A stretch of 64,000 nt of DNA from Octopus bimaculoides (lineage: Eukaryota). Where the stretch lies: positions 89,290,306 to 89,354,305 of the forward strand of contig NC_068986.1 of the NCBI RefSeq assembly GCF_001194135.2, read 5' to 3'. Made by a program: the position numbers and the translations under genes. Positions 3,794 to 53,098 of the stretch are shown one piece after another. Under the pieces are notes generated by a model, which was given only the letters and a program-made list of their open reading frames with translations, did not search any database and was not told the DNA's origin. Within the stretch, counting starts at the first letter, position 1, and the number at the start of each line of letters is the position of its first letter.

Positions 3794-3890
3794 ATGTCGA
3801 CATGCATTAGCATACTTCAAGCGTATTACATAATATGGATACATTTCCTATATAATATCTATCCATACTTACTTTTTTGGATGTTGTTGT
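3794..3890 (+). CDS. Leader exon 1: MSTCISILQAYYIIWIHFLYNIYPYLLFWMLL (hydrophobic signal/anchor)
   Basis: ATG with A at -3, in-frame upstream TAA at 3773-3775, phase-1 GTAAGA donor at 3891 in frame with all downstream exons. Confidence 0.6.
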
Positions 3891-3965
3891 GTAAGAATTA
3901 ATTGAAAATTATTACCCTGTCGTTTATACCTCGTAATTAGAAATTAACTATGTCTTCATTTTCAG

Positions 3966-4004
3966 TAATGGGAATTTTACATGCTCCACCGCATCAGTTT
4001 ACAG
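3966..4004 (+). CDS. Leader exon 2: (L)MGILHAPPHQFT
   Basis: TTTTCAG acceptor, GTATGG donor, 39 nt, phase 1-1. LHA|PP resembles a signal-peptidase site. Confidence 0.7.
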
Positions 4005-4064
4005 GTATGGTTCCTTTTTTCATTTTTATTTTATATTTTGGTTTATCAATTATTTGTTATTTAT

Positions 4065-4498
4065 TCTTTTCTACTCTAGGCACAAGGCCCGAAATATTCG
4101 GAGAGGGGGGGGCCAGTCGATTAGATCGACCCCAGTACACAACTGGTACTTAATTTATCGATCCCGAAAGGATGAAAGGCAAAGTCGACCTCGGCAGAAC
4201 TTGAACTCAGAACATAAAGACAGACGAATTACCGCTAAGCATTTCGGCCGGCGTGCTAACGTTTCTTATTTCTTTATTTCCCACAAGGGGCTAAACATAC
4301 AGGGGACAAACAAGGACGGAGAAAGGAATGAAGTCGATTACATCTATCCCAGTGCGTAACTGGTACTTAATTTATCGACCCCGAGAGGATGAAAAGCAAA
4401 GTCGACCTCGGCGGAAATTGAACTCAGAACGTAGCGGCAGACGAAATACCGCTAAGCATTTCGCCCGGCGTGCTAACGATTCTGCCAGCTCGCCGCCT
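4065..4498 (-). mobile_element. SINE family 1, two tandem copies
   Basis: Reverse-complement of the family core occurs twice. Confidence 0.9.
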
Positions 4499-5175: not shown

Positions 5176-5263
5176 GAGATTCATTGGGGAGCAACTGCAC
5201 TGAAGCATTCGATTCAAGATGTCCTAGTATAAAAAACATGTCCATGATTTCTGGCCACTGCAA
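5176..5263 (+). CDS. Module 1 exon A: GDSLGSNCTEAFDSRCPSIKNMSMISGHCK
   Basis: TTCTAG/GTACAT, 88 nt, phase 1 to 2, three Cys. Confidence 0.88.
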
Positions 5264-5782: not shown

Positions 5783-5868
5783 ACGTTTGCTCGCATATCA
5801 AAGATGTGGTCATCCAGATGAGGAATGCAAAGGTTATTTCGAAAAAACATTTAACGTTGAATGTTGTG
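5783..5868 (+). CDS. Module 1 exon B: RLLAYQRCGHPDEECKGYFEKTFNVECC
   Basis: TTTCAG/GTAAGA, 86 nt, phase 2 to 1. Confidence 0.9.
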
Positions 5869-6531
5869 GTAAGAATTTTTTTTTTAATTTCTTTTTGAAA
5901 TATTGTGAACAAACTACTTTCGAAATAAAAAAGATTGTGACTTTCTATTCAGAAGCGTTTATTGCCCACGTATAACCTTCATATTAACATGGTATAGTCG
6001 CGGTGATATCGTGGGAAGCTGTGCACCAATCTATTCAATATTGATGGATTCTGTTGCATTATTCTTTTCTAACTTTCCAATATCATTTTGCTGTCCACTC
6101 ATCTTTTTCTCTCTGCATTTTTCTGCATTTTCTTCACCATAATTCCTTGAAGAGTAGTCTTTAAAGCTAGTGGATCTCATCGCTTACTATACAGTCTCAG
6201 TTGCCTTTTCTTCCGTGTGTAAGGAGCAATTCACGTCAAACAACATGATATTGGAGGGCTTCGCTGTTTGCTCGTTTGGATGTAGCTCAAGTACAAGATA
6301 TGAAAGCTTAGTAAATTCTACTTCAATACAGAGATACCAGAAAATATTATTCTATGTCCGTCATACGTATGAGCACATAGAGTGTATGTGCATTCACCGG
6401 AGTCTGATGTAGTAGCTGAAAGATACGTTTCTGATCTTTTGCTATTCATTTTAGTTTAGTCTGTACAGTCTTTCAGAATGAGGTTCTACGAATACTAATT
6501 CTGTCCACGGTTTTACAGCATGTATCACTGA

Positions 6532-6574
<43 letters not shown>

Positions 6575-6576
<2 letters not shown>

Positions 6577-7752
6577 CACCAATGAACTTTGCATCCATGG
6601 AGTTGGACCGAGCTAGTCAAGGAACACAACCTGGCACAAAAATCAACAAGCGAATGTCTGAGGCTCCGAATCCCGCTTCTCAACAACACCTACCTCTCGC
6701 TACTTACAGTCTGTGCTCCACGTCTAGACACATATGACTCTCTCAACGCTACCTTCCGAGCCGTTCCATGAAACGATAAACTGATCGTTCTTGGCGACCT
6801 CAATGCTAGAGCCGGTCACGGTCACCATCTCTGTCAAGGCATCCTCGGCAAATACAGGATTGGAAACCACAGGGCTAATGGGCTCTGTGCGGGAAAAACG
6901 ACCTGAACACTTAACATGACGCTATAACATTTACTGCAGACGAGGTCATCGGCTACGCAAAGCACCAGAACCAAGACTGGTTCGCTGAAAAGAGTGAAGC
7001 GATCGAACATTTGATCAATAAGAAAAGAGTAGCGCGTGTTGCTTTCGAAAACCACCTAACGAGAAGCAACAAGAAATGCAGAAGTGCCAAAGGTGCTTCA
7101 AGAAAATCCAGAACTTCTGGTGGCAAGCAAAAGCTGCTGAAATCCAGGCTACCAAAGAGACATGCGTTGCTTTTATGTAGAGACCAAGATTTTCGGCCCT
7201 GTTAGTACGTCTACTGCTGCCTTGAAAGCTGTCGATAGCTGAAACCTTACCAGAGAAGATATCATGCAACATTGGAGAGAACATTTCCATCTCCTGAAAA
7301 ACCATTCTCAAACTTCAGTTGGCCCCTTGAGAAACACTCCCAATAGACCTATCAAACTATCGACATCCCATCTTCCATCCTTCCACAAATTCATGAAAGT
7401 CATAAAACGAATGGAACCTGGAAAAGCTCCCGGTTCAGACAACATCCCATACGGTGGGTACGGATTGGGATTCAAGCTGTTCTACCTGATACTGCAAATA
7501 TGGGACACTAAGACCTTTTCGGATAACTTCAAAAACGCAAATATCATTACCATCATCAAGAAAGGAGATCAGTCAGTCTACTCAAATACCGCGGTTGTTT
7601 CCCTGCTTAGCATTGCAGGCAAGAATTTCTTTCCTTCAAGTCAACATCAGCACTCACGCCTGGGAAACAGAAGCCGCCGACCGTCTATCCTGGCGAAGAG
7701 CAATTCATTTCAACTGTCCCATTTTCGAGAAAAGAAGAAAGGCTGAAGAAGC

Positions 7753-7786
<34 letters not shown>

Positions 7787-7900
7787 GTAAAGAAAGGAGC
7801 GCAAGGTCCTGTAACTACAGCCAAGACGACCACCTGCCCTGTCATGCGATTAATGCCCGCGACTGTTCCATGTTTGACCTGGCCTTCTGAGCCATGGCAG
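6575..7900 (+). mobile_element. RTE (BovB-like) LINE remnant, endonuclease and RT fragments
   Basis: TVCAP...DKLIVLGDLNARAG...GILGKYRIG (APE) and GKAPGSDNIP...NANIITIIKKGD..SLLSIAGK (RT). Confidence 0.85.
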
Positions 7901-8501
7901 AATTAAGCATCATGGAAGCACCAGACGAACCAAATTCGAACACGNNNNNNNNNNATATATATATATATATATAATTGAATGAGCTGGAGTCATCAAGGAG
8001 AAGTGCAGTTGGACCATATATTTGTAATCACTACAATTGTTTTCACGCAACTTAGTTCTCCAGGTTCGGAGGTATTTGGTTTCGTGACAATTTCTCTGCA
8101 TTATGTGATCTAATTGTGCTTCCTCAGGTGATATAAGTATTGGTTTCGTAACCTCAAATTCTCAGCTTCAAGCTCATCCTTTCTGCCTATCACTAAGTGT
8201 ATCAAAAAATGTGGTGTGCGTGAAAGTCTGTTGATAAACTGCTTTGACTGTATGGATGGAGTAGGACAGTAGCTATGATGTTGATGTTGATATTGAAGGG
8301 AGTGTTATTTTTTTTTATTTGCGATGTTAATTTATTCTTTGTGGTTGGTTACACTTGCTATTGTCCTTGGCTGACCTTCAAGACTTCACTGGTCAATCAG
8401 TTAATAAGCTTGCATGTACAAACACATCGTTCTGTATATATCTACATGTATACGCACCCATACATGCAAGTTCCTACACACATATACATTTATATTTTGA
8501 C

Positions 8502-8730
8502 ACGGCGGCGAGCTGGCAGAAACGTTAGCACGCCGGGCGAAATGCTTAGCGGTGTTTCGTCTGCCGCTCGTTCTGAGTTCAAATTACGCCGTGGTCGACT
8601 TTGCCTTTCATCCTTTCGGGGTCGATTAAATAAGTACCAGTTACGCACTGGGGTCGATATAATCGACTTAATCCGCTTGTCTGTCCTTGTTTGTCCCCTC
8701 TGTGTGTAGCCCCTTGTGGGTAGTAAAGAA
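8502..8730 (+). mobile_element. SINE family 1
   Basis: Near-identical to 2557-2791. Confidence 0.9.
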
Positions 8731-9936
8731 ATAACACACATATACATTTATATACGTACTCGTGCTTGGACACACATATATATTTACATATATATTACAT
8801 ATTAAACATGCAAGGATTGTATGATAGTGTACATACATTCTGAATTGGTGTCTGTTAGAATACTGCCTCTCGAATACCGCCAGTCTCGAATATGTTCAGA
8901 AGGGATTGTCTTGATATCTATGTGACTCGTGTAGTATACAAATTTATGACTGGTGACGTAACTTAGATGTTGTTTTGGAATGGGTCACCCCGTATGTTTT
9001 TTGAAATATAAAGAAACCTTATATACGTATGATTTTAAAACATTCGGTGATAGGACGTATCTTTGTACTACTGTGCTCAGGAAGAGAATCATTAAAACTA
9101 TTTCGATATACAAAAATAAATAGGATTCTCAAACCGATAGATAGTTTACCATCGAGCGTTTCAAGTTTTTTTTTTCTTATTCACAGAAATGTATAGGATT
9201 TTGTTAAAAAAAGTCAACAGATGTTTTGCGATGTCAATTAGAATTAATTGGAACGTAGGTTTCATTTGTAATGTTTGTGAATGTTAATAATGTTTATACA
9301 GCATAAATATATATCCGATTGTTAAGATACTGTGGAGAGTTCATCACTATCAGTGTCATAATCAGTCACTCTTTAATAAACACGATCCACATATCAACAT
9401 CAGACAATACAAATACAACTACTAAGCAAATATGGCACATCTTTTCAGGCACTTCTCCAAAAGAAAGATCTTAGTTTCACTCAGAAGGCAAAATCATACG
9501 CGTCATACACCAACATCCTGAATCTTACATGACACTCTCGTACACTGTGCTTCCTGCATGGCACCGTGAACCAATAAATATATTCTAAAATACTAAAAAA
9601 TGGCAAAGGAGTTATGTCAATCGATATATACTTTTCAAAACTCGAAATTTTTACATATTCATAGCATCAAATATGACACCAAAAACTAGAGAAAATCCAG
9701 CATGATAATATTTATATTTTTCATTTTATATTTTTTGTTAAATATAAATGAAAAGCAATTACTGCCACGTTGTCTCCATGCAAAATATCATAAAATCTAC
9801 TTAAAAGCAGAAACTTATCCCTGCTGTCGATAATATATGGATTACAGAGAATAATTAAATATTGCAATCTAAATGCCTCGTGTAATATGTTAACGATATT
9901 GAAGAGCTTAAATTATATATTTTACTAAATTTCTAG

Positions 9937-10036
9937 GTCGTACAAAGTTAGAAAACTGCTTACAAAAGGCTCAACACACATGTAAACATGCTTTAATTCT
10001 TCATCCTATAAGTAAACCCGATAAGCATTATTGCAG
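9937..10036 (+). CDS. Module 2 exon A: GRTKLENCLQKAQHTCKHALILHPISKPDKHYCR
   Basis: TTCTAG/GTAGAT, 100 nt, C-x7-C-x16-C. Confidence 0.88.
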
Positions 10037-11539: not shown

Positions 11540-11631
11540 ACGCTTGCTCGTATATGCGACATGTGCTTCTGCAATCAAAAACTATGAATGCAAAAGTTAC
11601 TTCTCTAATCTGTATTTCGGTGAATGTAAAG
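11540..11631 (+). CDS. Module 2 exon B: RLLVYATCASAIKNYECKSYFSNLYFGECK
   Basis: TTCCAG/GTAAGA, 92 nt, C-x8-C-x11-C. Confidence 0.9.
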
Positions 11632-13563: not shown

Positions 13564-13663
13564 CACACCTAGAGTCTCGACACTGCATGGCATTATACAG
13601 ACAATCTTGCTTCGAAGCTGTAAGAGATTATCCAATATCGCAACCAGATTTCGAGTACTGCAA
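13564..13663 (+). CDS. Module 3 exon A: AHLESRHCMALYRQSCFEAVRDYPISQPDFEYCK
   Basis: TTGTAG/GTACGT, 100 nt. Confidence 0.9.
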
Positions 13664-16598: not shown

Positions 16599-16690
16599 AC
16601 GCCTTGTTGTGTTAAAACAATGTGCTGAACTAGAAAAAAACACAGTGTGTGCAGAATTCTTTAAAAAACTAATTGAGAAAAACTGCCCCC
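16599..16690 (+). CDS. Module 3 exon B: RLVVLKQCAELEKNTVCAEFFKKLIEKNCP
   Basis: TTCCAG/GTAAGA, 92 nt. Confidence 0.9.
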
Positions 16691-16762
16691 GTAAGAATAT
16701 TTTTATTAATTATATCTTATTGGATGTAATTTTGTATTGATGAACTATATTCGAAAAGATAT

Positions 16763-17112
16763 TAGGAAGGTGGGCTGAAAAGTTCATAAGCTGGCTTTGA
16801 AGGAATGACGCAGGATCTGTGAAATCATGCATGTATTAATTTCAACGATTCTTATTAATAACTGCTTTGTTTGTTTCCAGATAAACTGGCATCTTACTGT
16901 TCAAGGAAGACTTCAAATGTGATCAGTAGCAACTTCTTTTGAAAATGAACAAAATTTGGTATTGTGGTGTTATCAAGTACCTGCAGCAAAAGGATTTAGC
17001 ATTCAAGGACATTCATGTTGCTATGCTTGCTACTTTAGGGAATGGCAGTCCAGCTTTATCAACAGTGCAAAAATGGGCAGTTAAATATAGGATGTGAAGG
17101 GAAAGTCTTGAA
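16763..17112 (+). mobile_element. 5' fragment of a second mariner family
   Basis: From ATG 16945: MNKIWYCGVIKYLQQKDLAFKDIHVAMLATLGNGSPALSTVQKWAVKYRM*RESLE, a mariner N-terminal HTH. Confidence 0.75.
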
Positions 17113-17147
17113 GTATATTTTGGCATATTTACACCATTTGTGTAGCA

Positions 17148-17525
17148 GCGAGAGGAGGTGCAATGGCCCAGTGGTTAGGGCAGTGGACTCGCAGTCATAG
17201 GATTGCGGTTTCGATTCCCAGACCGGGCGTTGTGAGTGTTTATTGAGCGAAAACACCTAAAGCTCCCACGAGGCTTCGGCAGGGGATGGTGGTGAACCCT
17301 GCTGTACTCTTCCACCACAACTTTCTCTCACTATTACTTGCTGTTTTTGTTGTGCCTGTAATTCAAAGGGTCAGCCTTGTCATGCTGAATATCCCCGAGA
17401 ACTACGTTAAGGGTACACATGTCTGTGGAGTGCTCAGCCACTTGCACGTTAATTTCACGAGCAGGCTGTTCCGTTGATCGGATCAACTGGAACCCTCGAC
17501 GTGGTAAGCGACGGAGTGCCAACAA
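17148..17525 (+). mobile_element. tRNA-derived SINE, third family
   Basis: A box TGGCCCAGTGGTTAGG and B box GGTTTCGATTCCC, followed by a ~300 bp non-tRNA body. Confidence 0.75.
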
Positions 17526-18282
17526 GTAGCAGCCAGAAACTTTCTCCACGTCAAAACTCACTGAACGGCTTTCTTACGGGTTGGAATATGACTCAAGTAT
17601 ATTTGAACTGATAAAAGCTATGTATTTATACACATTCCTGCTTAAAGCTGCCACCACATAATTAGTTTGCAGTGACCCACCGATTAGCACTACCAGTCAT
17701 TGCACAATGATGAGAATATCAAATGAGAGACTGCCTCTCAGATCAACTCTCTAATTTTTATTACTGAGACGAGATAACCACTCCGAAATACTTGCATCTC
17801 AAAGTCTGGGTAGGTGACACTGAGAGCTGACTTTGGTCTATTTTCACTGTTTGACTGTAGCTGAAAGTTGCCTCCACGACAAAATACAGTAAACGGCTTT
17901 GTTAGGGATTCGAATATGAGTCAAGCATATTTGAACATTTAAAATTTTGTGTCTGCAGAAGGCACATTGTGCAGTGCCACGATACATGAACATATCTGCA
18001 TGACACGAGAATTACACAGAAATGGAAATCGAAAGACTACATCCGTATTTCTCAGTCATGCGAGTAATCAGTAAAAATCCTTTATGAACAAACCTATGCT
18101 TAGTGAAATTTACCCTCTTCTGGTATGGGAAAACAGAGATTACCAAATTGCTGGTGTCAGAAATGGAATGGCGCGCAATGTATGTATGTATCTATGTATG
18201 TATGTAGATTGATGAAGACATACCTGTATATACATATATGTAAATATACACATGCGCGCGCACACACACGTATATTATACAT

Positions 18283-18580
18283 NNNNNNNNNNNNNNNNNN
18301 NNNNNNNNNNNNNNNNNNNNNNNNNNNNNNNNNNNNNNNNNNNNNNNNNNNNNNNNNNNNNNNNNNNNNNNNNNNNNNNNNNNNNNNNNNNNNNNNNNNN
18401 NNNNNNNNNNNNNNNNNNNNNNNNNNNNNNNNNNNNNNNNNNNNNNNNNNNNNNNNNNNNNNNNNNNNNNNNNNNNNNNNNNNNNNNNNNNNNNNNNNNN
18501 NNNNNNNNNNNNNNNNNNNNNNNNNNNNNNNNNNNNNNNNNNNNNNNNNNNNNNNNNNNNNNNNNNNNNNNNNNNNNNNN
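18283..18580. other. Assembly gap (others: 2528-2537, 7945-7954, 21009-21320, 30254-30263, 45371-45647, 59938-59978)
   Basis: N runs next to microsatellites. Confidence 0.99.
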
Positions 18581-18989
18581 ATATATATATGTATGTATAT
18601 AAATCTTTTTTTGTAGGAGCGGGAATATTTGAATTTTTAAGTAAATTCATAAAGCTATATAAAATGGACATATTGGGTTCAAAATTACTTCTGTATGTGT
18701 GCGTATGTGTGTGTGAGTGTATGTGCGTGTATACATGCATACGTACACACATACATACATACAGACAGACAGACAGACAGACAGACACATACCTACAAAC
18801 ATACAGGCCTGATCAATAAGTATCCGGACTGTTGCAATAGTAACGAAGCTAAAGCATGAAGAATGAAGCCGCTTGGCACAGGTTGACCTTCAACTCCGCA
18901 GTGCAAGTGCACTAACTTTTAACATGCTTGGAAGGAAGTTGTGTAACATGTGATCGTCGCATTTACCATAACAGAGAAAGTTGTCAAAG

Positions 18990-19585
18990 TAAAACCTGTC
19001 CAGAGGCTTACGCAAGGTTGCAGAAAGTGTAATTTCTGTATGTTTTCTTTTCTTGCTCGACCTACGTGTCGATTCTGCATTCACTTGTGGTTTGGGGACC
19101 TCGAACATGTAATACCATATATCCACTGGCTCATCTTGGTATACCCTTTCTTTAATTGGTTAAAATGCCTTTAATGTTCATAATTTGATCCTTTTTCCAT
19201 GTACATTCCATTACCTAGACGTTCAGTTATATTACCTTGTTCCCAGTCCTGTTTTCCATTGTTATATATTTTAAAATACACTTCATCACCAGTGTTAAAA
19301 AATTTCGTTCGACTTCTCGAATTTTGTATTTTCCGTTTCCTACTCGGCAGAGGTTTGTCAAACACAACGAATCTTTCTGGAGAACATCAAATCTGAGGGT
19401 GACTTGCCCGAATCTGTATTTGGATATGGTGTTATTCTGTACAATTGTAATAACTTTGTCATATTTCTATCTTCAAAAGTTTATGTCTGGTCTTTCTTAA
19501 GGCTCTCATGAATGTGTCGACGAATCTTTCCACTAACGCATTTGCCCTCGGATGGTATGGCGGAGTTAATACATGCTTCATCTAC
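18990..19585 (-). mobile_element. Gypsy LTR retrotransposon integrase remnant
   Basis: TPYHPRANALVERFVDTFMRAL...GKSPSDLMFSRKIR; FNTGDEVYFKIYNNGKQDWEQGNITERLG. Confidence 0.8.
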
Positions 19586-19589
19586 ACTG

Positions 19590-19930
19590 ACTTACAAATG
19601 CACCGTCTACAACATAGTAAATAAATCCTATAGCTACTACATAGGATCTACCACAAATTTTTAAAGATATTATGTACATTTAAACTCGTTTGAATATAAA
19701 GAGAATAACAATTCTACATCGCTAGCTAGCCACATACACCATCTAATTAATGGAAAAATACAATATAGACTTTCCCGGGCTATAATAGACTCTGGTATGT
19801 TATATCAGGGCCAGTATTCCGTTTGTGGACTCTACTTAAAGGAAGCTCTCGAAATTTTAACCTATAACTAACCACAATTGCTTAACAAACACAACGAAGC
19901 CTTCACAACGTGTAAACACAAATTGTTCCG
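19590..19930 (+). mobile_element. Penelope-like element GIY-YIG endonuclease remnant
   Basis: YKCTVYNIVNKSYSYYIGSTTNF..HLNSFEYKENNNSTSLASHI...LNKHNEAFTTCKH. Confidence 0.65.
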
Positions 19931-20927
19931 TACTTTTAAATTCTTTCATAAATCTAAGTGTAAATTCGCCCCTACGAATATCACCCACATGCAAACCGCC
20001 ATGATCATTAACACATACCCATCTATATCTCTTCTATCAACCTTACCTCATCACTTTATAAGATAAAGCTTAAGTCTTTAATTTATTTTTAAAGTTTAAC
20101 CTAATAAACCTCCTAATATTTAATTCTACTACCTACTCCTAAATAATTTAACATTCAACTAGTTTCTCCATCCACGACTACCTACACACCCGTAACTCCA
20201 TTGCTAAAAATAACTCTACATCCACTGATCTTAGCCAGAACGGAAACAAGTATTTACTACTAGATTTCATCCCCCAACCCCTATAGATCATTAGAATGCT
20301 ACTGGCACCTACTATTCTCTTTAAATTCATTTCATTTTGCCCTATTCTGTTTTTTTTTGTTTTTTTTTACGTTATCTTCTTTTGCCTCCTCCTCCTCCTC
20401 TCTCTTATCTTCTTGACTATCTTTGTACACTATATTCTTAGATCGTATATTTTTATATACCTTACATTATCCTTAACGCCAATCCTTAATTCCACCTCAC
20501 TCTATCTACCTCCCTTTCTATTTATTTATTTTTCTTTCTTTTTACCACTTAATAGTCACCTCCGTTACCATTCTGTTATTGAAAGTTGATATATTCGCGT
20601 TTTTTTTTTTTCTGGATTTACGCAGGATTGCACCTAAGGACTTATGGACTTATATCTACAAGGTTGGAAAGTTAAAGTGTGAACGTTTATGCTTTTTTCT
20701 TCTCTTTCTTCATCTCCTTATTCCTTTATTCCTGTCATCTATATCGTCATTTCATTAATCTTATTTTCCCCATTTCTCTTTGATGACAGAATATGACATA
20801 CTTTGGGATGTCCCAAAAACAGCTGTCAGACATTTAATTTATTTCCAATAATGTATATGACTTAAGAAGTTTGCCTTGCCTTAATGCTTGTTGTCCTCTT
20901 TAATATACATACATACATATATATATA

Positions 20928-20928
20928 T

Positions 20929-21002
<74 letters not shown>
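20928..21002 (+). repeat. (GATA)n microsatellite; another at ~15705-15742
   Basis: Direct reading. Confidence 0.95.
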
Positions 21003-21003
<1 letters not shown>

Positions 21004-21321
21004 CACACNNNNNNNNNNNNNNNNNNNNNNNNNNNNNNNNNNNNNNNNNNNNNNNNNNNNNNNNNNNNNNNNNNNNNNNNNNNNNNNNNNNNNNNNNNNN
21101 NNNNNNNNNNNNNNNNNNNNNNNNNNNNNNNNNNNNNNNNNNNNNNNNNNNNNNNNNNNNNNNNNNNNNNNNNNNNNNNNNNNNNNNNNNNNNNNNNNNN
21201 NNNNNNNNNNNNNNNNNNNNNNNNNNNNNNNNNNNNNNNNNNNNNNNNNNNNNNNNNNNNNNNNNNNNNNNNNNNNNNNNNNNNNNNNNNNNNNNNNNNN
21301 NNNNNNNNNNNNNNNNNNNNN

Positions 21322-21357
<36 letters not shown>

Positions 21358-22013: not shown

Positions 22014-22104
22014 CGGCCGACAAGTGTATGATTTCTTTCAAAGAAATTTGTCCTGAAGCGGAAAAAAAGTATCCTATACTTATACCAGATACGAATTACT
22101 GCAG
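22014..22104 (+). CDS. Module 4 exon A: PADKCMISFKEICPEAEKKYPILIPDTNYCS
   Basis: TTGCAG/GTACAT, 91 nt. Confidence 0.9.
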
Positions 22105-23444: not shown

Positions 23445-23533
23445 TCGTTTGCGCGTATATGAAGTATGTGCTTATTCGAAAAGCCACTCCTGCAAACTGC
23501 ACTTCAACGAACTCATTCATGCAATATGTGAAG
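23445..23533 (+). CDS. Module 4 exon B: RLRVYEVCAYSKSHSCKLHFNELIHAICE
   Basis: TTATAG/GTACGA, 89 nt, C-x7-C-x11-C. Confidence 0.88.
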
Positions 23534-24305: not shown

Positions 24306-24405
24306 CTCATGAAGAACAACGTGACTGCATGGAAATATACAGAACAACTTGCTTCAAGGCCTTTAACGATTATCCTGAATTGAATCCAGATACAAGCTAC
24401 TGCAA
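24306..24405 (+). CDS. Module 5 exon A: AHEEQRDCMEIYRTTCFKAFNDYPELNPDTSYCK
   Basis: TTGTAG/GTACAT, 100 nt. Confidence 0.9.
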
Positions 24406-24746: not shown

Positions 24747-24838
24747 ACGCCTCTTCGTATTTCAAAAGTGTGCTGAAGGTGATGATAATAAGCACTGCAT
24801 GACTTATTTCGACGCAATCTCTAAAATCCAATGTGGCG
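24747..24838 (+). CDS. Module 5 exon B: RLFVFQKCAEGDDNKHCMTYFDAISKIQCG
   Basis: TTCCAG/GTAAGA, 92 nt. Confidence 0.9.
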
Positions 24839-25507: not shown

Positions 25508-25598
25508 AGGAAAATATATGCGTACATGAATTGCAAGTAAAATGCCCGTCAGGTGAAAAATTGTATCCGATTGGTAACCCAGATTTCAATTACTGCAA
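25508..25598 (+). CDS. Module 6 exon A: EENICVHELQVKCPSGEKLYPIGNPDFNYCK
   Basis: TTGCAG/GTACAT, 91 nt. Confidence 0.9.
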
Positions 25599-27638: not shown

Positions 27639-27727
27639 ACGCATTGCCTACTATAGAACTTGTTCTAACGACATCAGTAAGAGGTGCGAGGATTTCTTCC
27701 AACGAAGTGGTCTTGATAAATGTCCTA
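27639..27727 (+). CDS. Module 6 exon B: RIAYYRTCSNDISKRCEDFFQRSGLDKCP
   Basis: TTCCAG/GTAAGA, 89 nt. Confidence 0.9.
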
Positions 27728-28219: not shown

Positions 28220-28310
28220 AAATCGACTCGTGTATAGAAGAGGCCAAAGATATTTGTCCCGATGCGGAGAAACTATATCCCAAGCTGCCTCAAGATACGA
28301 ATTTATGCAA
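28220..28310 (+). CDS. Module 7 exon A: KIDSCIEEAKDICPDAEKLYPKLPQDTNLCK
   Basis: TTGCAG/GTACGT, 91 nt. Confidence 0.9.
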
Positions 28311-34751: not shown

Positions 34752-34786
<35 letters not shown>

Positions 34787-35590
34787 ATAAAATTAAATAG
34801 AGAGATACAATAATTTATTTATATCAGAATATAACATAACATAAACAATTATTAAAACATCAAAAAGCCAACAATTTGCTTCGACTTATACACAATTTTA
34901 TATATATATAAACAATTCCTTTATATATAAGTCTCATTAGAGCCAGAGTTTAAAGATACACAAAATTCCATGTGAAAGGACAGCTGGATTGTAAAAAAAA
35001 TTGATTCAAATGTCTATGTATTATGAACGTGAGCGTTAACTATTCAATTACTTATCAATTACAATTAAAAAAGAACAAAAAAATTTTAACGGACAAAATT
35101 ATTAAGTAAGTGTAATCTACTACTATCGAAATATATTTCTATAGATCTCAAATGATATTAATCCAAACTCTTTTGTGTCTACAAGAATCTTTTGCTTTTA
35201 TAACATACGACAATAATATATATATATATGTGTATATGGTTCAGTATCAGGGTCTTGCTTTATCTAGAACTGTAATAAAACGTGTAAAAATATATAAATG
35301 ATAATTATATCTTTAATATATAATTCTTCAATTTCTTTAAAGTTATTGATATAAAAAATATTGTTTAAAGTAACTCATAGGAATGTTCTATAATTATAGT
35401 TTCTCGGATAGACAATTCCGTAATAAATATGAAGATAAACTTATATGGCTGTAAACATTATAACCTAAATACCCCATAGATATAGAGTTCGACTAAAAGG
35501 CAGTGTTCCAGCATAGCCACAGTCAAAATAACTGAAACAAAAAAGGAATAAAAGTATATATATACTTATATATATATATACTTACATATA

Positions 35591-35657
<67 letters not shown>

Positions 35658-35800
35658 CCGAGTACTATAAACTGGTACTTAATTTGTCAATCTTAGTGAG
35701 ATTTAAGCTCTATACACTAGTAATGGAAAATCTTACCTGGTATATTGTATATTCATGATCGTATTTCTGAAATGCCTTTCCTCTCGCTATTATATCCCAG

Positions 35801-35889
35801 ACGTCTCATGCTATATATCACGTGTGCTGATGAGAAGAGATACCATTGCCAAGACCACATCGTCAAAATATATCGCGAAAAATGCAGAA
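35801..35889 (+). CDS. Module 7 exon B: RLMLYITCADEKRYHCQDHIVKIYREKCR
   Basis: CCCAG/GTAAGA, 89 nt. Confidence 0.88.
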
Positions 35890-38538: not shown

Positions 38539-38638
38539 CACCACTGGAAGCAGCTGACTGCCAAGGAGTATACAGTTCAACTTGCTATCCTGGCATAAGA
38601 GACTACCCGGTAACATATCCAGATACGAACATCTGCCC
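38539..38638 (+). CDS. Module 8 exon A: TPLEAADCQGVYSSTCYPGIRDYPVTYPDTNICP
   Basis: TTGCAG acceptor, weak GTTCGT donor at the homologous position, 100 nt. Confidence 0.83.
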
Positions 38639-39559: not shown

Positions 39560-39651
39560 GCGCCTTGTCGTTTTTAAAACATGTGCTGACAAATACGCAG
39601 ACAAACATTGTTTCCAGTCCTTTCAAAACGCCTATAAAGTTTATTGCCCTG
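39560..39651 (+). CDS. Module 8 exon B: RLVVFKTCADKYADKHCFQSFQNAYKVYCP
   Basis: ATCCAG/GTAAGA, 92 nt. Confidence 0.9.
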
Positions 39652-39992
39652 GTAAGATCATATTAATAATTTAGAATTGCTGACAGAAACATAGTGTCTG
39701 CGAACAATAATGGACTAGGTTAAAATATGGAAATGAGCAGTATTATAATAAGATTTTTCCTTAATTCTAAATGAGGTATCTCAACGAATTGTCAAACACA
39801 AAATCACAAACTTTCATGCAGAAAGTATCTTTGTCATAAAAATACGCAACATAGTTTACAATTCATAACACTGATTAAGACTAGACTTGAATAGATTAAT
39901 TTATGTTTTGTGATTAGATATTTCCTTAAATTTACAATTCCTAAGAATTTTAAGTATGACAAAAATAATATATCAAATTTGTATGCTTTCAG

Positions 39993-40083
39993 AGAAAGAC
40001 AGCTGCACAGATTTATTCAAAGTATATTGTCCGGAAGCCGAAGAACAGTATCCCATACGTGAAGATGATATTAATCTTTGCAA
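39993..40083 (+). CDS. Module 9 exon A: EKDSCTDLFKVYCPEAEEQYPIREDDINLCN
   Basis: TTTCAG/GTAGAT, 91 nt. Confidence 0.88.
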
Positions 40084-41045: not shown

Positions 41046-41134
41046 TCGCTTGCTTACATATGAAACATGTGCAATTCATAAGAAGCATAACTGCACAAAT
41101 CACTTCTACTTGACGTCTCTCGCTTTGTGTGAAG
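41046..41134 (+). CDS. Module 9 exon B: RLLTYETCAIHKKHNCTNHFYLTSLALCE
   Basis: CCCAG/GTACGA, 89 nt. Confidence 0.88.
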
Positions 41135-44062: not shown

Positions 44063-44162
44063 GATTTGAAGTACGAAGTGACTGCGAAAATAGATACTTG
44101 CCTCAATGCACTCAAATCTTGAAGCACTACCCATTGAAAAGTCCAGATCCGCACAGCTGCGC
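44063..44162 (+). CDS. Module 10 exon A: GFEVRSDCENRYLPQCTQILKHYPLKSPDPHSCA
   Basis: TTGTAG/GTATGT, 100 nt. Confidence 0.88.
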
Positions 44163-45646
44163 GTATGTATTCATATATTTACAACTACTATTACTTCTAC
44201 AATTAATACATATTATATTTAAATCAGTGGTTGTAACGTTAAAAAGGTCGCTGATCGGCGACGTGATTTCGGTTATAATTCCATTGCAATCGACTGATGT
44301 CTTGAATATCTGAAGCCGAAACTTTTCGGAAGACCGTTGTAGCGTATTTTTATGTGCGCGTATGCATGTGTGGTTGTGATTGTATATATATATATATGGA
44401 AGTGTATGTCTCTTACTACTTGACAGCTACACTAAGTTTGTTTACACTCCGTAATTTAGATGCTCATTAAAACAAAGACTAACAGAATACCTACCTGCTT
44501 TAAATGAGGTAACAGTACTGATATGATCAATGAGCCTACTCAAAGCTAATACCTCAAATATGGATTCGCTCCAATGACTGAAACCAGTAATAGAGTAATA
44601 CAGTGAACAATACAACGACATCGTTAACAACTAAGTCCTATTTCTTCCATTGACACAGAACTAGAAATAATTACCTGGAGCGCAGTATTTCAATAGGGTA
44701 CTGTATCCGATTTGTAATGAATATATCGACCTCAAAATGGAGTAAACCAACCACATTCAGAATTCAACACAAGTTTAGCAAAATATTAAATATAGTTGTA
44801 TCCGGTGGAAATTCCACAGTTATTTTGAAAATTATGTGTAATTTTCTGAGTCATTAAATCCTTGAGATGATGTAAAACTCCATACAAGTAGTAACAAAGG
44901 TGTAATCTCAAGATACATCTGAATGATTTTATATTCTTTCATCTACTTTCTGAGTTGTCTGTTATTTTTCACTTTGTCTTAAAAAAGTAAACAGTATTAA
45001 CTATTAAGCAAAATCAAAGATATTATCTATAATCTTATTTTGCTTCAACACATTGGTAAAATTCTAACAAATGTTAATAAGACCTTTAAAAAAAATTTTA
45101 AAAAACCTCAGCAATCTTTAACTTACCAATCTTTAACTAACACTTTTCATTCACTGTTCCCTTCAGCAAATACATTCTTTCTCTCTTATTTTCTCTACCC
45201 CTTTCTCCGTTTACTTCTTTCTTCTGTGCTAAATATTCTCTTCCATACTCTCTTTCTCTACCTCTCCCTTCAACAATTTAACCACATACCTTAATAACAA
45301 ACCTTTCCTCCTAGGTCTCGCTGCTAACCCCCCCCCCTTTCCCTGTCTCTCTCTCTCCCTTTCCTCAATANNNNNNNNNNNNNNNNNNNNNNNNNNNNNN
45401 NNNNNNNNNNNNNNNNNNNNNNNNNNNNNNNNNNNNNNNNNNNNNNNNNNNNNNNNNNNNNNNNNNNNNNNNNNNNNNNNNNNNNNNNNNNNNNNNNNNN
45501 NNNNNNNNNNNNNNNNNNNNNNNNNNNNNNNNNNNNNNNNNNNNNNNNNNNNNNNNNNNNNNNNNNNNNNNNNNNNNNNNNNNNNNNNNNNNNNNNNNNN
45601 NNNNNNNNNNNNNNNNNNNNNNNNNNNNNNNNNNNNNNNNNNNNNN

Positions 45647-45696
<50 letters not shown>

Positions 45697-46140
45697 CTTT
45701 CTTTATTTCTTTCTTTTGTCTAAGGTCTCTTCTTCTTTCTCTCGCTCCACTCCTATCTCTCATTCCACCTCCTTCTCTCACTCTCATTCTACCTCCACTA
45801 TCTATCTTTCTCTCTCTAACTAACATGTGCGGTGCGAACGATAAAACTGGTTTCTACTATATGAACAAGTATACAATTATGGAGCAGGCAATGCACTGTT
45901 AAGTATAACTCCTGCTTCTGGCTACAAATAATTTTCTTAGTACCGGAAGTATGAATGGATAGTTACAAATTGCAGTAAGGTGAGCTCACAATGTAAATAG
46001 TGACTACATTGACAGATATTTTAAACTGGTACATACTATTTTCAATACGAAAATTCGAAATATTTTCAAATTTACGGATAATGCTACGTTTCGTTTTTTA
46101 ACTTGGAAGTAATTTTTACCAATTTATTTTCCTCATTTAG

Positions 46141-46232
46141 GCGCCTTGTCCTGTACAAAACGTGTGCTCAGAAACACAAAGACCATCATTGCATGGAAGC
46201 ATTTCAAAGAAGATTTGAATCTGATTGCCCTA
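46141..46232 (+). CDS. Module 10 exon B: RLVLYKTCAQKHKDHHCMEAFQRRFESDCP
   Basis: TTTAG/GTGAGA, 92 nt. Confidence 0.9.
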
Positions 46233-46371: not shown

Positions 46372-46465
46372 GCAAAGACGACTGCATGGAGATATACAAA
46401 CGTTGTCCGATACCCGTAAGGGATATTCCCTTAGATGAATCAGTTATGAATGAGGAGGACTGCAA
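46372..46465 (+). CDS. Module 11 exon A: SKDDCMEIYKRCPIPVRDIPLDESVMNEEDCK
   Basis: TTTCAG/GTACAT, 94 nt, C-x6-C-x18-C. Confidence 0.87.
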
Positions 46466-48436: not shown

Positions 48437-48522
48437 ACGACTAGATAAATATGAAAGATGCTCAACTGAAGACCAAAGATGCAGTAATCTGTTCCAAACG
48501 ATGTTTAGTGTCTTATGTTACA
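48437..48522 (+). CDS. Module 11 exon B: RLDKYERCSTEDQRCSNLFQTMFSVLCY
   Basis: TTGTAG/GTAAGA, 86 nt, C-x6-C-x11-C. Confidence 0.87.
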
Positions 48523-48629: not shown

Positions 48630-49100
48630 TCACTTCACTTCTTACTTCCTGATCGAGCAATAGAGGAGGCCCATGAACTGAGTTCTTGATTTCTCCAGCT
48701 GACTTTGCCGTGCGCGAGATCTGGGTTTTTTTTTCTAATAACATATGTGTGTGTCCACATTACCCCTACTTATGTCTTCTTTCTACCACTCAAAGTTTCT
48801 TAAAGAATGATTTTTGCCAGGTTAGTAGATCTTTCTGAATAAGCCCACCGTCTCACATTGCTTTTACACAGAATTGTTATATTATCTACTTCGATGCTAC
48901 TGTGAGTTAGATGGGTTCGCGCACTTCTTCGGTGGTGATTTGGTCCATGTACAAGAATCATAGGAGGCTCCATCTTATTTCGATTGCATGTGTTTTTCCT
49001 TGTATCAAAGTTGTGACGATCCATATTTCGCATGTTTATGGAAGATTTCGGGTACATATGCTCTGCGGTACCTATACACTTTCTAATGTTAGTTTTCAAC
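48630..49100 (-). mobile_element. RTE LINE C-terminal remnant
   Basis: AIEIRW..YMDQITTEEVR and SERSTNLAKIIL resemble the RTE ORF C-terminus. Confidence 0.45.
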
Positions 49101-51039
49101 TTCAGACTGTAGGCTGGCAGAATCGTTAGCACGCTAGGTGAAATGGTTGGCGGTATTTTTGACTCCAGTTACTTCAACTGTTATTTATGCCTAGACTCTC
49201 ACTTTTGGAGCAAGGTATCTCTTTTGATGAAACCATTTCTACAGCTTTTATTCAAAGCTATTGGAGAACTTACCAGGGCACCGTCTAAGTCAGCCAATTT
49301 ATATATACTTACTGTCAGCTTATCAATTTTATTCAGCAAATATTAGCATTTTGATATTCGTTTCTCCGAATATACTTGTGCTTATATTATTTTAAGGGTA
49401 ACGTTTACAAATTACATAAGTCAGAGGGCGAAGAAGAAGAGCCTAGTCAGTCACTCCTAATGTGACATAAACCTCACTTTTCGTTGTTGCCTTAACTTCA
49501 AGGAGTTGCTAAAATGAATCAGCTGCTTTACCCTAATGAATATTTTTACGATGACAAATCATTAAGCTCCTTTCTAAAGTCTATGAAGACAAGCTAGAAT
49601 TTTCGTTCTTGTCCACTGTATTTCTTGTTGAAAAAGCGGTGTTGAAGACCTAATTAGTAGTACTTCTAACTTTACTGAAACCCGCCTGTTCTATAACTTT
49701 TTGAGTCGTTAATCTTTTCAGAGGGATTTTAAGTAGTATCTCGCTTGCAAGATTGGTCTTACTGATAATATGATCATTGTTGTAATGTTGGTTTTAGTAC
49801 ACTATGGAAATCAGTAACACAAAACTTCGAAATTAAGATATCTAGTATAAACGAATGGAGGAAATAACCTTCCATGAGTGACAGATTCCTATTGTCTAAC
49901 AAGGAGAACGTAGACATATGCACACAGAGGTTAGATGCTGACAGAAAAATGACTAACCTGCTTGCTAGTATCGTAAAATTCCTTTATCTCCATCATACTA
50001 GTTATCCCCACGGTTTGTAGACCATTTCTGTTTCCAACGTCCGTAATTACACCAGTCGAACGGTACCCATTGGGAATATGAAACATTCTTTGAGGATTTG
50101 AACCTTGTTTATCAGTGGAGTTTTGCATTACACTCACTTTAATTTCTATAAATACGTACACATCCATGTGCGAACTAAGAACAGAACGTGTATATGTATA
50201 TTCAAGAAAGGTTAGAATTACAGCTTTAATCTTATTGTAGTGATTACTTTCTTGCTATCCTATTTATATATGTTCCATTTTGAAGTCATACACCCCAACA
50301 GTACGGCTTGAGCACAGCTATCACAAGCACTACTTTACTGACATGCATCAATTAGAATTCGTACACATAATTCGAAAAGGGTGAGACACCATACGAAGTA
50401 AAGAAACTGCAAAGACCAAGGAATCTGCCTTCATCCTGCAATAGGATGTTCATAATTATGTATAAGACTCGTTGACATCCTATTAAAATGGCCTAGATGG
50501 ATATGTTGAGTATGAACGCCACCACACTTGTATACCTGTTTTTCTTTCTACTACAGGGGAGTAGGTCTTTTCCTGGTCTGTGATCCTCCAGTGTTTTTGC
50601 ATTCCATATGATAATTGGTCTGTCTTCAGAGAATCTCTGCCAGGTCATTTATCACATTCAGACAAATATAGTAGATATTGTTAATCTGGGTTGATACTAT
50701 TGCGGTATATAGTTACTTTTTGCTTGTTTATTTCAGTGAGCTTTTTCCTACTTACCTTTTGTTTGTTCATTTCACTTGTTTATTTCAATGAGCCAATCCT
50801 TCATTTCTCACCACAGCTTATTTCTTTCAATTAGATTGTTGAAACGAGGCTGTTTCAATTCGTTTGAGAATTTTATCCTGGCTGGTGAATTAATTTTCGA
50901 AATGATACATTGTTTGGGGGCATTTACTTTTTCCCTCCAGCTGAGTAAGAAATTTTGGGGTTAGCTGACTACCAGGGATAAACATCCACTCCGCTTAACT
51001 AGGGAGCAGTATGCCATTCATCAAAGGCACTCCTTTAAT

Positions 51040-52930
51040 TCAAAGCTACCCTATACTAAAAGCAATTATTATGGTTATTCCTGAAATCAATATTTTAGTA
51101 AACAATGGAGCGTTGAAAACACTCCTTGCAGTAGTGATTTTGGCTCATCATATCCCTAGAGTTTATCAATCGATTATCGAGTCGTGAGTTGATATGAAAC
51201 CCCACTATATGATATGGTTGTATTTAAGTTAGTATAATTGACATTAGTAATTTTGTTAAAGTTACAATTATTTTATTAGTAATTAATCTATGAAATTTAA
51301 AGGAAAACTGAGACTGCGAAAATATGAACTATTCCTGCAACTTAACTGTAATCTCAAAGGATTAATTTCAATTAAGTTATATCGGGTCGTCAAAATCTAA
51401 TTACACATTATACCACATAAGTAAACTAATCATGATTGCTAGAATCGTGGCTTTCTCCTGTTTCACAATCTTCCATGGTACTCTTTCATAGCGAATTGAT
51501 AGAAATTTGTAGCGAATTGATAGAATTCAGATTAATTGGATGAGGACACATTTGATGTGAATATATTCATAATGATATATTAGGTTTAAAGTGCATAATA
51601 AGTTTTACTTTCACAATATAACAACTTTCTTTTCAGGGTGATATATATACCTGAAGGTTGAAAATACTAGAAGTACTACTGAGGTAAGTTCTATATTTCT
51701 AACATTAATTCATCAAATCGCATTATCAATTTCATATTGCTTGTACTTCATCATTACATCTTTTTCAATTACTGGGTGTTGAAGATATGACTTTTGCAGG
51801 CCCTCAATGCAAAGTGAGCTTGATGCAGCTGGGGTTCCATTTAAATGGCTGGGGTTCAATTCCTGCAGGAAAGAGATGAGCAGGGAGAAGATTCCAAATG
51901 GCCTATGTTCTGAAGAAGAAAGATTAGGCATGATGCTGTTGTGCGAGCCAGACACAAAGGTAACGGGAGGTGAAGAGACGAGAGGCACAGGAAAGCCAAA
52001 TGGAATAGATACGGGACTAACTATCTCCGATGGTGTGAAGCTGTGATAACAGATTTAGAAAAGGCAGGGGGAGTAAACCTTTTGTATGTGGGTGATTTAA
52101 TGTCAATACTCGAATATTTGTGAGTATATACCAGCAGCAATATCCGCGGCAGAGCGTGAGCACACTATTGTAGTCCTCATTTTCACTTTACCTTGTTTAC
52201 TGTTGACATATTTTCTGGACTTGAAATAAAGAAGAGCTAATGAAGCTCCTCCACTATAATAAATCCCTTAAAATTTGGAGTGACTGTGAGGGCAGTAGCT
52301 CCCTTCTGCTCGGTTTCAGTGTGAACTCATGGTGTTTTCTCAAATAGCATATAATGTCAATGATATAGCATGGGATATATGAGCGATATCTCCTCAATGT
52401 GCCTGCTCACAACTATAATACCGCTCCGTTAATAAACATAATAAGATATATGCAATATATATTTAATATTTTGTTGTAATGTAGTTTCCATCCTACACAG
52501 CTATGTGTCAATATTAACACTAATGAAACGCCATCAAGAGATGTACGTAGGATTTCAATATAATATACAATGTCGTTACTCATGTAGTAACATGACATTT
52601 ACATATTGATTGCCATTATTATTACTTAATCGTTAATAGAATAATATCAGTGCAACGCTTCATGTAGGTATAATAGGATATGATTTAAGTTTTATAATCA
52701 GAAAGCAGATAATACCTTGACCGTTCCAAGGCCTTTGAAAGTTAGAAGGCGAGAGGAGATATTTTCAATCAGAAAACTGTATGCTTACAATAGAATGAAC
52801 TCAACTAAATGCATTTAAGAATCAATTGGTGATATCAAACTAAGTGTTTAATAGGACCGCTGTAAAAGTAACTAGAATTACATTGTGAACCAAAACATTA
52901 CTTTTTGCAATTTCATTACCAAAGTCGCAT
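51040..52930 (+). repeat. Copy 1 of a diverged ~1.9 kb direct duplication
   Basis: Collinear anchors with 56520-58390, e.g. TGCGAAAATRTGAAC, TTGGATGAGGA, CTCCTCAA..TGCCTGCT, GAAAAC..ATGCTTACAAT, TGAACCAAA.CATTAC. Confidence 0.85.
51637..51683 (+). CDS. Candidate penultimate exon; joined to module 11 it encodes R then TGA (51639-51641)
   Basis: Strong TTTCTTTTCAG acceptor and GAG/GTAAGT donor. Both sites are conserved in the paralogous copy at 57055-57095. Confidence 0.45.
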
Positions 52931-53032
52931 TAATAGATAATACTGTATTGCATAAGATAAATATACCTTCTCTATTTTAAATCACTCTTCAAAACAAATG
53001 TTTATCGCTATATTTTTCCATTCTCTTTACAG

Positions 53033-53098
53033 GTCTTATTCCGATTAGCAATCAATCCTGAAGGTTATGGCACTCAATTAAAATTCCTATAAAATAAA
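53033..53098 (+). CDS. Candidate terminal exon (SLIPISNQS* if joined directly to module 11) with AATAAA at 53093-53098
   Basis: Long polypyrimidine tract + TTTACAG acceptor, phase-1 stop at 53059-53061, AATAAA ~30 nt later, then GT-rich sequence. Confidence 0.5.

Follow-up and report, generated by a model that had tools for sequence, protein, structure and literature searches.

An intact octopus gene encodes a signal peptide and eleven tandem six-cysteine modules with a weak, local resemblance to the RGM N-terminal domain

A long series of short, alternating exons on contig NC_068986.1 of Octopus bimaculoides raises two questions. First, do these exons make up one intact gene? Second, what is the repeated six-cysteine module that they encode? 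The answer to the first question is plain. The locus is a real and intact gene of 25 coding exons, RefSeq LOC128248050, and the RefSeq protein XP_052824402.1 (704 aa, labelled "uncharacterized protein") is the exact translation of the full spliced coding sequence, with GT..AG boundaries at all 24 introns. The original prediction had called the gene unannotated, which is outdated since RefSeq already carries LOC128248050 / XP_052824402.1, identical to the spliced model. The coding exons are listed below, numbered from the first letter of the window, that is, the whole 64,000-nucleotide stretch analysed. The module exons were all placed by a module HMM together with their splice sites, and exon 2 by the full spliced CDS translation.

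about -3220..-3184, outside the window, +, exon 1: ATG, encodes MKYAISMCFLTV
3966..4004, +, coding exon 2, 39 nt: cag/TA..ACAG/gtatgg
5176..5263, +, module 1 exon A, 88 nt: C-x7-C-x12-C, shortened
5783..5868, +, module 1 exon B, 86 nt
9937..10036, +, module 2 exon A, 100 nt
11540..11631, +, module 2 exon B, 92 nt
13564..13663, +, module 3 exon A, 100 nt
16599..16690, +, module 3 exon B, 92 nt
22014..22104, +, module 4 exon A, 91 nt, short type
23445..23533, +, module 4 exon B, 89 nt
24306..24405, +, module 5 exon A, 100 nt: module modelled with AlphaFold2
24747..24838, +, module 5 exon B, 92 nt: module modelled with AlphaFold2
25508..25598, +, module 6 exon A, 91 nt
27639..27727, +, module 6 exon B, 89 nt
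28220..28310, +, module 7 exon A, 91 nt
35801..35889, +, module 7 exon B, 89 nt
38539..38638, +, module 8 exon A, 100 nt
39560..39651, +, module 8 exon B, 92 nt
39993..40083, +, module 9 exon A, 91 nt
41046..41134, +, module 9 exon B, 89 nt
44063..44162, +, module 10 exon A, 100 nt
46141..46232, +, module 10 exon B, 92 nt
46372..46465, +, module 11 exon A, 94 nt: C-x6-C-x18-C variant
48437..48522, +, module 11 exon B, 86 nt
51637..51641, +, last exon, coding part: ttttcag/GGTGA, in which GG completes Arg704 and TGA follows (stop 51639-51641)

Both ends of the gene differ from those first proposed. The ATG is located 3.2 kb before the window, and exon 2 encodes (V)MGILHAPPHQFT(G), with which the signal peptide is completed (its second half) and the mature protein begins. 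The hydrophobic leader assigned to position 3794 lies outside the gene, because its junction with the acceptor at 5176 makes a stop codon (T+GA). At the other end, the CDS stops at 51641 (GG+TGA), equivalent to the gene end at 64862 in the comparison copy L001 (GCA_001194135.2), and not at 53061, and the protein has 704 aa instead of the claimed ~724-732. The part in between held: the 22 module exons, when joined, give a single stop-free frame of 677 codons with 67 cysteines, 66 of which are the core cysteines of the 11 modules.

Searching the six-frame translation with the module HMM returned exactly 22 exons, all on the plus strand and strictly alternating between A and B, with E-values of 1e-6 to 1e-11 apart from the weaker A1 (0.058) and A11 (0.038); no further module exons were found by this HMM in introns or downstream. 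The splice sites agree with the predicted alternation of 22 exons of 86-100 nt, each having an AG acceptor and a GT donor (22/22). A exons are entered in phase 1 and carry 2 nt out, while B exons take in 1 nt and carry 1 nt out. Each module is one phase-1/phase-1 A+B pair, and therefore the array grew by tandem duplication of exon pairs, the duplication unit apparently being a double module of one long and one short type. The expected spacing C-x7-C-x16-C-[K/R/x]R-x6-C-x7/8-C-x11-C was found in nine modules, whereas modules 1 (C-x7-C-x12-C) and 11 (C-x6-C-x18-C) deviate from it. Pairwise identity between modules is 20-48%, yet the six cysteines are present in every module. The linkers between modules are 4-8 aa long and contain no dibasic processing sites; the recurring K/R-R sits within helix 2, adjoining C3.

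Could the gene model be a computational construct only, placed over an exon array that is unexpressed or decaying (a pseudogene), or could it be an artefact of assembly? RefSeq gives the model as a prediction, no transcript contig was found for the exact protein, which is carried by the genome record only, and the locus has five assembly gaps. However, all five N runs are intronic (5869-9936; two within 16691-22013; 28311-35800; 44163-46140), none of them is spanned by a reading frame, and the 704 codons over 25 exons (36% GC) contain neither a stop nor a frameshift. Moreover, the splice sites are all canonical, 66 of 66 core cysteines persist despite the low identity between modules, and the module is kept in a paralog and in related genes of two other Octopus species, so that we consider such an artefact highly improbable. 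The comparison copy L001 is the same assembly and so gives no independent view across the Ns. A second view comes from the neighbouring tandem paralog LOC128248155, whose modules 1-9 are collinear one-to-one with those of LOC128248050, with identities of 42-71% on the diagonal vs 17-49% off it. The module array predates the duplication that gave LOC128248155. Because modules 1-9 are collinear, comparison with the paralog shows no module missing where introns contain gaps; the reading frame is unaffected by the gaps, and the gene ends are now corrected.

The product of LOC128248050 consists of a signal peptide, MKYAISMCFLTVVMGILHA, and 11 tandem modules of ~60 aa each. The signal peptide is homologous to those of the relatives described below, neither a TM segment nor a GPI tail was found in the protein, and its C-terminus lies two residues past the final cysteine of the last module with no hydrophobic tail, all in keeping with the secretion proposed earlier. 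The AlphaFold2 model of a single module (module 5) has a pLDDT of 91.3, and that of two modules 86.9, both showing the same helix pattern. Helices are predicted at residues 2-15, 17-22, 32-45 and 49-63, and two of the six cysteines lie on or beside each main helix. The module is thus predicted with high confidence to be a small helical bundle with six invariant cysteines, as had been anticipated, and the cysteines probably pair as three disulfides. The check suggested with the original prediction, an AlphaFold model followed by Foldseek, gave no match of any kind in the PDB, RGM chains included.

An exhaustive profile search of 1.84 billion (1.84e9) representative proteins found 24 true relatives, all of them from Octopus (Octopus bimaculoides, O. 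vulgaris and O. sinensis). The family is apparently confined to Octopus, in line with the lineage restriction first supposed, and has expanded into two Octopus genomic clusters. Many relatives are single-module proteins that have a signal peptide and the A/B intron at the same place, and often end in a hydrophobic tail; in the single-module gene LOC128249882, the intron comes after C3+AA in the same phase as in LOC128248050. Such a C-terminal tail, present in about 10 relatives and absent from the LOC128248050 protein, probably serves as a GPI-attachment signal. The family is not described in Pfam or in the literature searched. The whole protein matches no Pfam family and, whether by sequence or by Foldseek, no solved structure, and the module is indeed an unrecognised one.

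Several known families invite comparison. The GLG1 cysteine-rich repeat (PF00839) and DUF19/CPG4 (PF01579), both named as leads at the outset, are likewise repeated or small cysteine-rich extracellular modules of comparable size, but at E<=10 Pfam shows neither of them in the LOC128248050 protein, in its relatives or in any module searched singly. The relative A0A0L8GPX5 (P0008) carries the UniRef name "GDNF/GAS1 domain-containing protein", the sole support for a GDNF/GAS1 identity; PF02351 has no match at E<=10 to P0008, the LOC128248050 protein or any of 56 modules, and no GFR-alpha or GAS1 chains are among the PDB profile matches. The GDNF/GAS1 (GFR-alpha-type) domain is all-helical, disulfide-rich and extracellular, and occurs in GPI-anchored co-receptors of the TGF-beta superfamily. 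GFR-alpha domains have ~10 cysteines in ~100 aa, compared with six in ~60 aa for the octopus module.

The arrangement of MKYAISMCFLTVVMGILHA followed by 11 modules also recalls the secreted cysteine-rich repeat proteins (SCREPs), which are defined by a signal peptide and then tandem copies of one small cysteine-rich domain (PMC6262176). SCREPs are an architectural class and not a homologous family, mostly of 2-4 knottin- or Kunitz-type repeats and from venoms, whereas the octopus protein consists of 11 helical modules whose type has no earlier description, and it is not known to be linked to venom. The protein might be a SCREP-type constituent of venom or saliva, act as a pheromone, or carry small hydrophobic ligands, largely along the lines of the original prediction, which also named immune recognition as a possible role. 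Its helical fold and conserved aromatic residues would suit such a role, as would the lineage-specific expansion of the family in tandem clusters, a pattern typical of genes for venom, reproduction and chemosensation. The logic would resemble that of helical six-cysteine odorant- or pheromone-binding proteins or Aplysia attractin. But neither Pfam nor the PDB gave a sequence or fold match to OBPs, attractin or toxin families, a 60-residue bundle of three helices and three disulfides would leave little room for a ligand cavity, and there are no inter-module cleavage sites to release single peptides. We consider this role unlikely.

A different resemblance, absent from the original prediction, emerges from single modules. 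The whole LOC128248050 protein has no match at E<=10 to the N-terminal domain of repulsive guidance molecules (RGMs) in Pfam (RGM_N, PF06535), whereas 27 of the 56 modules match it weakly when searched singly (best E 2.3e-4), and any other Pfam family is matched by two modules at most. With the non-cysteine residues shuffled and the cysteine positions fixed, none of the 56 matches RGM_N. The relative P0003, with four modules, scores 37.9 bits (E 2e-9) and is the one relative above the PF06535 gathering score of 24.2 bits. Against the PDB, each of the two family profiles has RGMB N-terminal domains as its four best matches (E 0.04-0.36), and hhalign with an alignment of RGMA/B/C N-domains gives P=0.0011 and a probability of 20%. 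RGM_N is the sole outside resemblance detected for the module, and it is weak and local, spanning ~24-30 of ~62 positions in the central C-x8-C-x7-C helix region only. The common core reads D-x2-[FY]-C-K-x-L-x2-Y-x2-C-x7-C, in which the cysteines are C3, C4 and C5 and, counted from C3, D is at -4, the aromatic residue at -1, K at +1, L at +3 and Y at +6; it also includes a hydrophobic residue at C5+4 (56 of 56 modules).

The RGM N-terminal domain is a three-helix bundle with three disulfides (PMC7354924), known for RGMA, RGMB and hemojuvelin with 4UHZ, 4UI0 and 6Z3H as reference structures, and like the octopus module as predicted it is small and extracellular, with three main helices and six cysteines, two per helix. 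The spacing in human RGMB, C-x4-C-x22-C-x8-C-x7-C-x21-C (validated against the PDB), differs from that of the octopus module at C1-C2 (x4 vs x7), C2-C3 (x22 vs x16) and C5-C6 (x21 vs x11), leaving only C3-x8-C4-x7-C5 in common, with x7 in 37 of 56 modules. Helix 3 is ~10 residues shorter in the octopus module, and the glycine of the RGD/RGN loop is missing. RGM proteins (RGMA/B/C, DRAG-1) continue from RGM_N into RGM_C and a GPI anchor; the LOC128248050 protein is without both, and RGM_C (neogenin-binding, autocleaving) has no Pfam match in it or its relatives, many of which, like the RGMs, appear to be GPI-anchored. Unlike RGM-N, which is said to be unreported in other protein families (PMC10084454), the octopus modules are found singly as well as in tandem, with as many as 11 to an array.

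These data allow two origins for the module. It may be an independent helical domain, born in octopus or too diverged to place, with a convergent likeness to RGM_N, in which case the protein could be secreted to play a structural or protective part, for instance in mucus, the egg coat, or the lining of suckers or gut, and its many stable modules would provide protease resistance and cross-linking and not the binding of specific ligands. The restriction of the family to Octopus, the local extent of the RGM_N similarity, the lack of a Foldseek match in the PDB, and the short linkers without dibasic sites, with K/R-R inside helix 2, are all consistent with this. On the other hand, the RGM_N signal is specific, given its loss in the cysteine-preserving shuffles and its standing as the sole recurrent Pfam match, and the protein lacks the stretches that matrix proteins typically have, whether low-complexity, Gly/Pro/Ser-rich or mucin-like. 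The modules are also individually kept between the paralogs, which suggests module-specific surfaces. We regard convergence as doubtful, though a possibility of some weight, and tentatively prefer the view that the modules of this intact gene are divergent relatives of the RGM N-terminal domain and its product a soluble multivalent binder.

On this preferred reading, the LOC128248050 protein would most likely be a multivalent extracellular binding protein. Its 11 rigid protein-binding modules, stapled by disulfides and strung together in soluble form, would let it serve extracellularly as a multivalent binder or scaffold, and the most concrete candidate ligands would be TGF-beta/BMP-family dimers. 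Contact may be made through the helix 2-helix 3 face, with the residue at C5+4, equivalent to RGMB Leu103, which is hydrophobic in 56 of 56 modules and Phe in 41. Ligands would be trapped or presented by those family members that are soluble and have several modules, and the GPI-anchored single-module relatives might act as co-receptors. Mutation of any one of Gly101, Leu103 and His106 of RGMB abolishes BMP/GDF binding (PMC7354924), and two of these three contact residues are missing from the octopus modules, Gly being found at the Gly101 equivalent in 5 of 56 and His at the His106 equivalent in none. Binding of the highly conserved BMPs also fits poorly with a fast-diverging, lineage-restricted and tandemly expanded family.

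The octopus clade is known for developmental and neural novelty. A bolder and improbable proposal is that the BMP-binding N-domain of RGM was freed and radiated in octopuses into GPI-anchored co-receptors of one module each and soluble traps with as many as 11, which would tune signalling by TGF-beta/BMP or other cystine-knot ligands; if so, the RGM-N fold would for the first time be known from proteins other than RGMs, and these proteins would make up a new class of morphogen modulator. Real descent from RGM_N would contradict the stated absence of RGM-N from other protein families and would indicate an octopus-specific layer of extracellular BMP/GDF regulation. Were the likeness convergent, the module would still be a clear case of a new helical fold stapled by disulfides, and a long protein built by phase-1/phase-1 exon-pair duplication would be useful for studies of domain birth and as a stable scaffold.

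LOC128248050 encodes a real, intact and secreted protein of eleven six-cysteine modules. The spliced protein is identical (100%, full length) to the RefSeq entry 'uncharacterized protein LOC128248050 [Octopus bimaculoides]' (XP_052824402.1, 704 aa), and the view of the original prediction that the gene was unannotated is therefore outdated. Translation of exon 1 together with the 24 exons of the window yields this 704-aa protein without a single difference, and each of the 24 introns is of the GT..AG type. The chromosome record of the window is CM046606.1 (GCA_001194135.2); a window position is obtained by subtracting 13221 from the position in L001, a record of the same assembly which extends further upstream. 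The exons at the two ends of the gene, the two variant module exons and the neighboring paralog are located as follows.

3.2 kb upstream of the window: exon 1, start codon and first 12 residues (MKYAISMCFLTV)
3966-4004: exon 2, 39 nt, completes the signal peptide
5176-5263, + strand: exon A of module 1, variant C-x7-C-x12-C, outside the strict pattern
46372-46465, + strand: exon A of module 11, variant C-x6-C-x18-C, outside the strict pattern
51637-51641: last coding exon, contributes GG and TGA only
L001 1-6681, upstream of the window: paralog LOC128248155, last module exons at L001 822-905, 3488-3580, 3887-3997 and 4716-4805

Both ends of the gene differ from those first proposed, a hydrophobic leader at 3794 and an end at 53061, neither of which is used. 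The segment at 3794 is unlike a signal peptide and, when joined to the acceptor at 5176, creates a TGA stop; it is further ruled out by the signal peptide actually used, which shares homology with the signal peptides of related proteins (e.g. MKDCISICLLIAG and MKATISMCLLILC).

The tandem array of six-cysteine exons, on the other hand, had been recognized essentially correctly. The window is AT-rich (~35% GC) and contains seven N runs. In a six-frame scan for the cysteine spacings, A-type and B-type segments were found on the + strand only, amid microsatellite noise, and every segment is a short open frame with a polypyrimidine-AG acceptor on one side and a GT donor on the other. The first two nucleotides of an A exon complete a codon and its last two are carried over (TGC-AA or TGC-AG before the gt), while a B exon takes in one nucleotide to encode Lys or Arg, followed by a near-invariant Arg, and carries one nucleotide out. 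Each A+B pair is therefore a phase-1/phase-1 cassette. The 22 exons, each 86-100 nt long, add up to 2034 nt and, once joined, read as 677 stop-free codons with 67 cysteines. A module profile HMM run against the six-frame translation of the window recovered exactly these 22 exons, all on the + strand and strictly alternating, and no comparable further module exon in the introns or downstream. Two weak matches, 25290-25346 (−) and 39968-40021 (+), with E values of 0.075 and 0.11, were judged to be chance; the latter runs into exon A of module 9, in a different frame.

The five N runs of the gene interval all lie in introns and so leave every reading frame uninterrupted. Modules 1-9 correspond one to one, in the same order, to modules 1-9 of the paralog (diagonal identity 42-71%, off-diagonal 17-49%), so that, relative to the paralog, no module is missing at the gapped introns; the sole other copy of the locus belongs to the same assembly and offers no independent look across the N runs. 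A literature search for a paper or expression data on this octopus family found none, and a silent gene model is considered highly improbable.

The module had been described as unrecognised, and this holds: the Pfam scan of the whole protein returned noise only (ApoM, E 0.2; Stonustoxin_helical, E 1), and phmmer with the protein retrieved no PDB sequence at E<=10. The suggested kinship with GLG1 or DUF19 found no matches, and the UniRef label 'GDNF/GAS1 domain-containing' carried by one relative was not reproduced by the Pfam or PDB searches.

The mature protein has a computed mass of ~80 kDa, a pI of ~7.1 and three N-x-S/T sites. Its modules are connected by linkers of 4-8 residues without dibasic sites; that this secreted protein serves as a venom, pheromone or carrier SCREP is unlikely. 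From an input alignment of 19 paralogous modules, AlphaFold2 confidently predicted module 5 as helical (pLDDT 91.3, pTM 0.77), with helices at residues 2-15, 17-22, 32-45 and 49-63, and the six cysteines of each module probably form three disulfides. The same helix pattern appears twice in a two-module model (pLDDT 86.9, pTM 0.55), the pTM of which leaves it uncertain how the two modules are oriented to each other. Foldseek searches of the PDB gave nothing meaningful for either model: the best E was 5.7 for the one-module model (a de novo design), and the two-module model matched only TPR-like helical repeats (TM ~0.27).

By exon length, the modules come as long (100+92 nt) and short (91+89 nt) ones. 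Identity among them is only 20-48%, yet all six cysteines are invariant. The most similar modules within the protein are those of the same type (4/7/9 and 3/5/8/10), which suggests that a long and a short module were duplicated together early on. Upstream, on the same strand, ~3.3 kb separate exon 1 from the end of the tandem paralog LOC128248155 (540/546 aa, 53% identical). In its isoform X2, module 6 is truncated (…NPDLNYY/DDKC…); a search for encoding contigs found no record for this isoform. The single-module relative LOC128249882 (L002 10001-14335, CM046618.1) has four coding exons, for the signal peptide, A, B and a hydrophobic tail, and its A/B intron, after C3+AA, matches that of LOC128248050 in codon position and phase; this makes the two-exon module the ancestral state in the family. 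Directly upstream of LOC128249882 lies another member, of 150 aa, so that small genes of the family form a second tandem cluster, on the 55.5-Mb chromosome.

When 1.84 billion representative proteins were searched exhaustively by hmmsearch with the module profile, 26 matches at E<=0.001 were obtained. The 24 true relatives all come from O. bimaculoides, O. vulgaris or O. sinensis, and by these searches the family appears restricted to Octopus, although a profile built from multi-module paralogs only may have overlooked more distant members among the cephalopods. The two others, a sponge repeat protein (P0011) and a metagenomic lipoprotein (P0022), were rejected as repeat-driven, each matching only 13-20 profile positions. 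A homologue search with a 56-module profile retained 3 proteins of 11 candidates, all previously known Octopus ones. The multi-module genes are located on the 117-Mb chromosome, and many single-module genes (80-125 aa) are clustered on the 55.5-Mb chromosome. A hydrophobic stretch closes the C terminus of about ten relatives but is absent from LOC128248050. Tails of 12-15 hydrophobic residues after small residues are present in P0003, P0006, P0008 (A0A0L8GPX5), P0014, P0017, P0018, P0019, P0023 and P0026; judged by a hydropathy heuristic alone, they are putative GPI-attachment signals, and the single-module relatives may thus be GPI-anchored.

The sole outside signal of the family is to RGM_N (PF06535), the N-terminal domain of repulsive guidance molecules. 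The four-module relative P0003 matches it with 37.9 bits (E 2e-9; gathering score 24.2), and weak RGM_N matches occur in 27 of the 56 non-redundant modules, with every other Pfam family matching at most two. When the non-cysteine residues were permuted with the cysteine positions fixed, RGM_N matches dropped to 0/56. RGMB N-domains were also the top-ranked PDB chains for both family profiles (E 0.04-0.36). With hhalign, the comparison with an alignment of RGMA/B/C (sequences validated against the PDB) and one bird sequence gave P=0.0011, but a probability of only 20% across 30 columns; this alignment is shallow, as the homologue search with the RGMB N-domain yielded two vertebrate fragments only. 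The likeness extends over helix 2 and the turn that leads to helix 3, where D-x2-[FY]-C-K-x-L-x2-Y-x2-C-x7-C is common to both, as is a hydrophobic residue four positions past C5.

RGM proteins are GPI-anchored, and their N domain binds BMP/GDF fingers, with Leu103 (RGMB numbering) inserted in a hydrophobic pocket and with Gly101 and His106 essential too (PMC7354924). The position of Leu103 is always hydrophobic in the octopus modules (Phe in 41/56), whereas Gly101 is matched in only 5/56 and His106 in none of the 56; the outer cysteine spacings differ, and the octopus proteins lack an RGM_C domain. The chance that the module is remotely related to RGM_N is roughly even. The likeliest mechanism, tentatively held, is that the LOC128248050 protein would have a multivalent binding or scaffolding role in the extracellular space; a lineage-specific secreted protein without such kinship, structural or protective in function, is somewhat less likely. 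For the binding role, TGF-beta/BMP-type ligands would be the most concrete candidate partners.

Elsewhere in the window, TA/CA-type microsatellites flank the larger N runs (18125-18788, 20881-21360, 45229-45826 and 59456-60477), which probably explains the assembly breaks there. They translate as YIYIYI or CVCVCV and are the source of most spurious long ORFs and false cysteine-pattern matches. The long ORFs in introns and downstream probably represent decayed repeats and not genes: those at 7264-7746 (+), 62393-63040 (+) and 62347-62973 (−) have no Pfam match at E<=0.01, and that at 60471-60971 (−) has a Ser/Thr-rich low-complexity translation. A mariner/Tc1-type transposase fragment (26111-26611, +; Pfam Transposase_1, E 1e-15, plus HTH domains) sits in the intron of module 6, between exons A and B.
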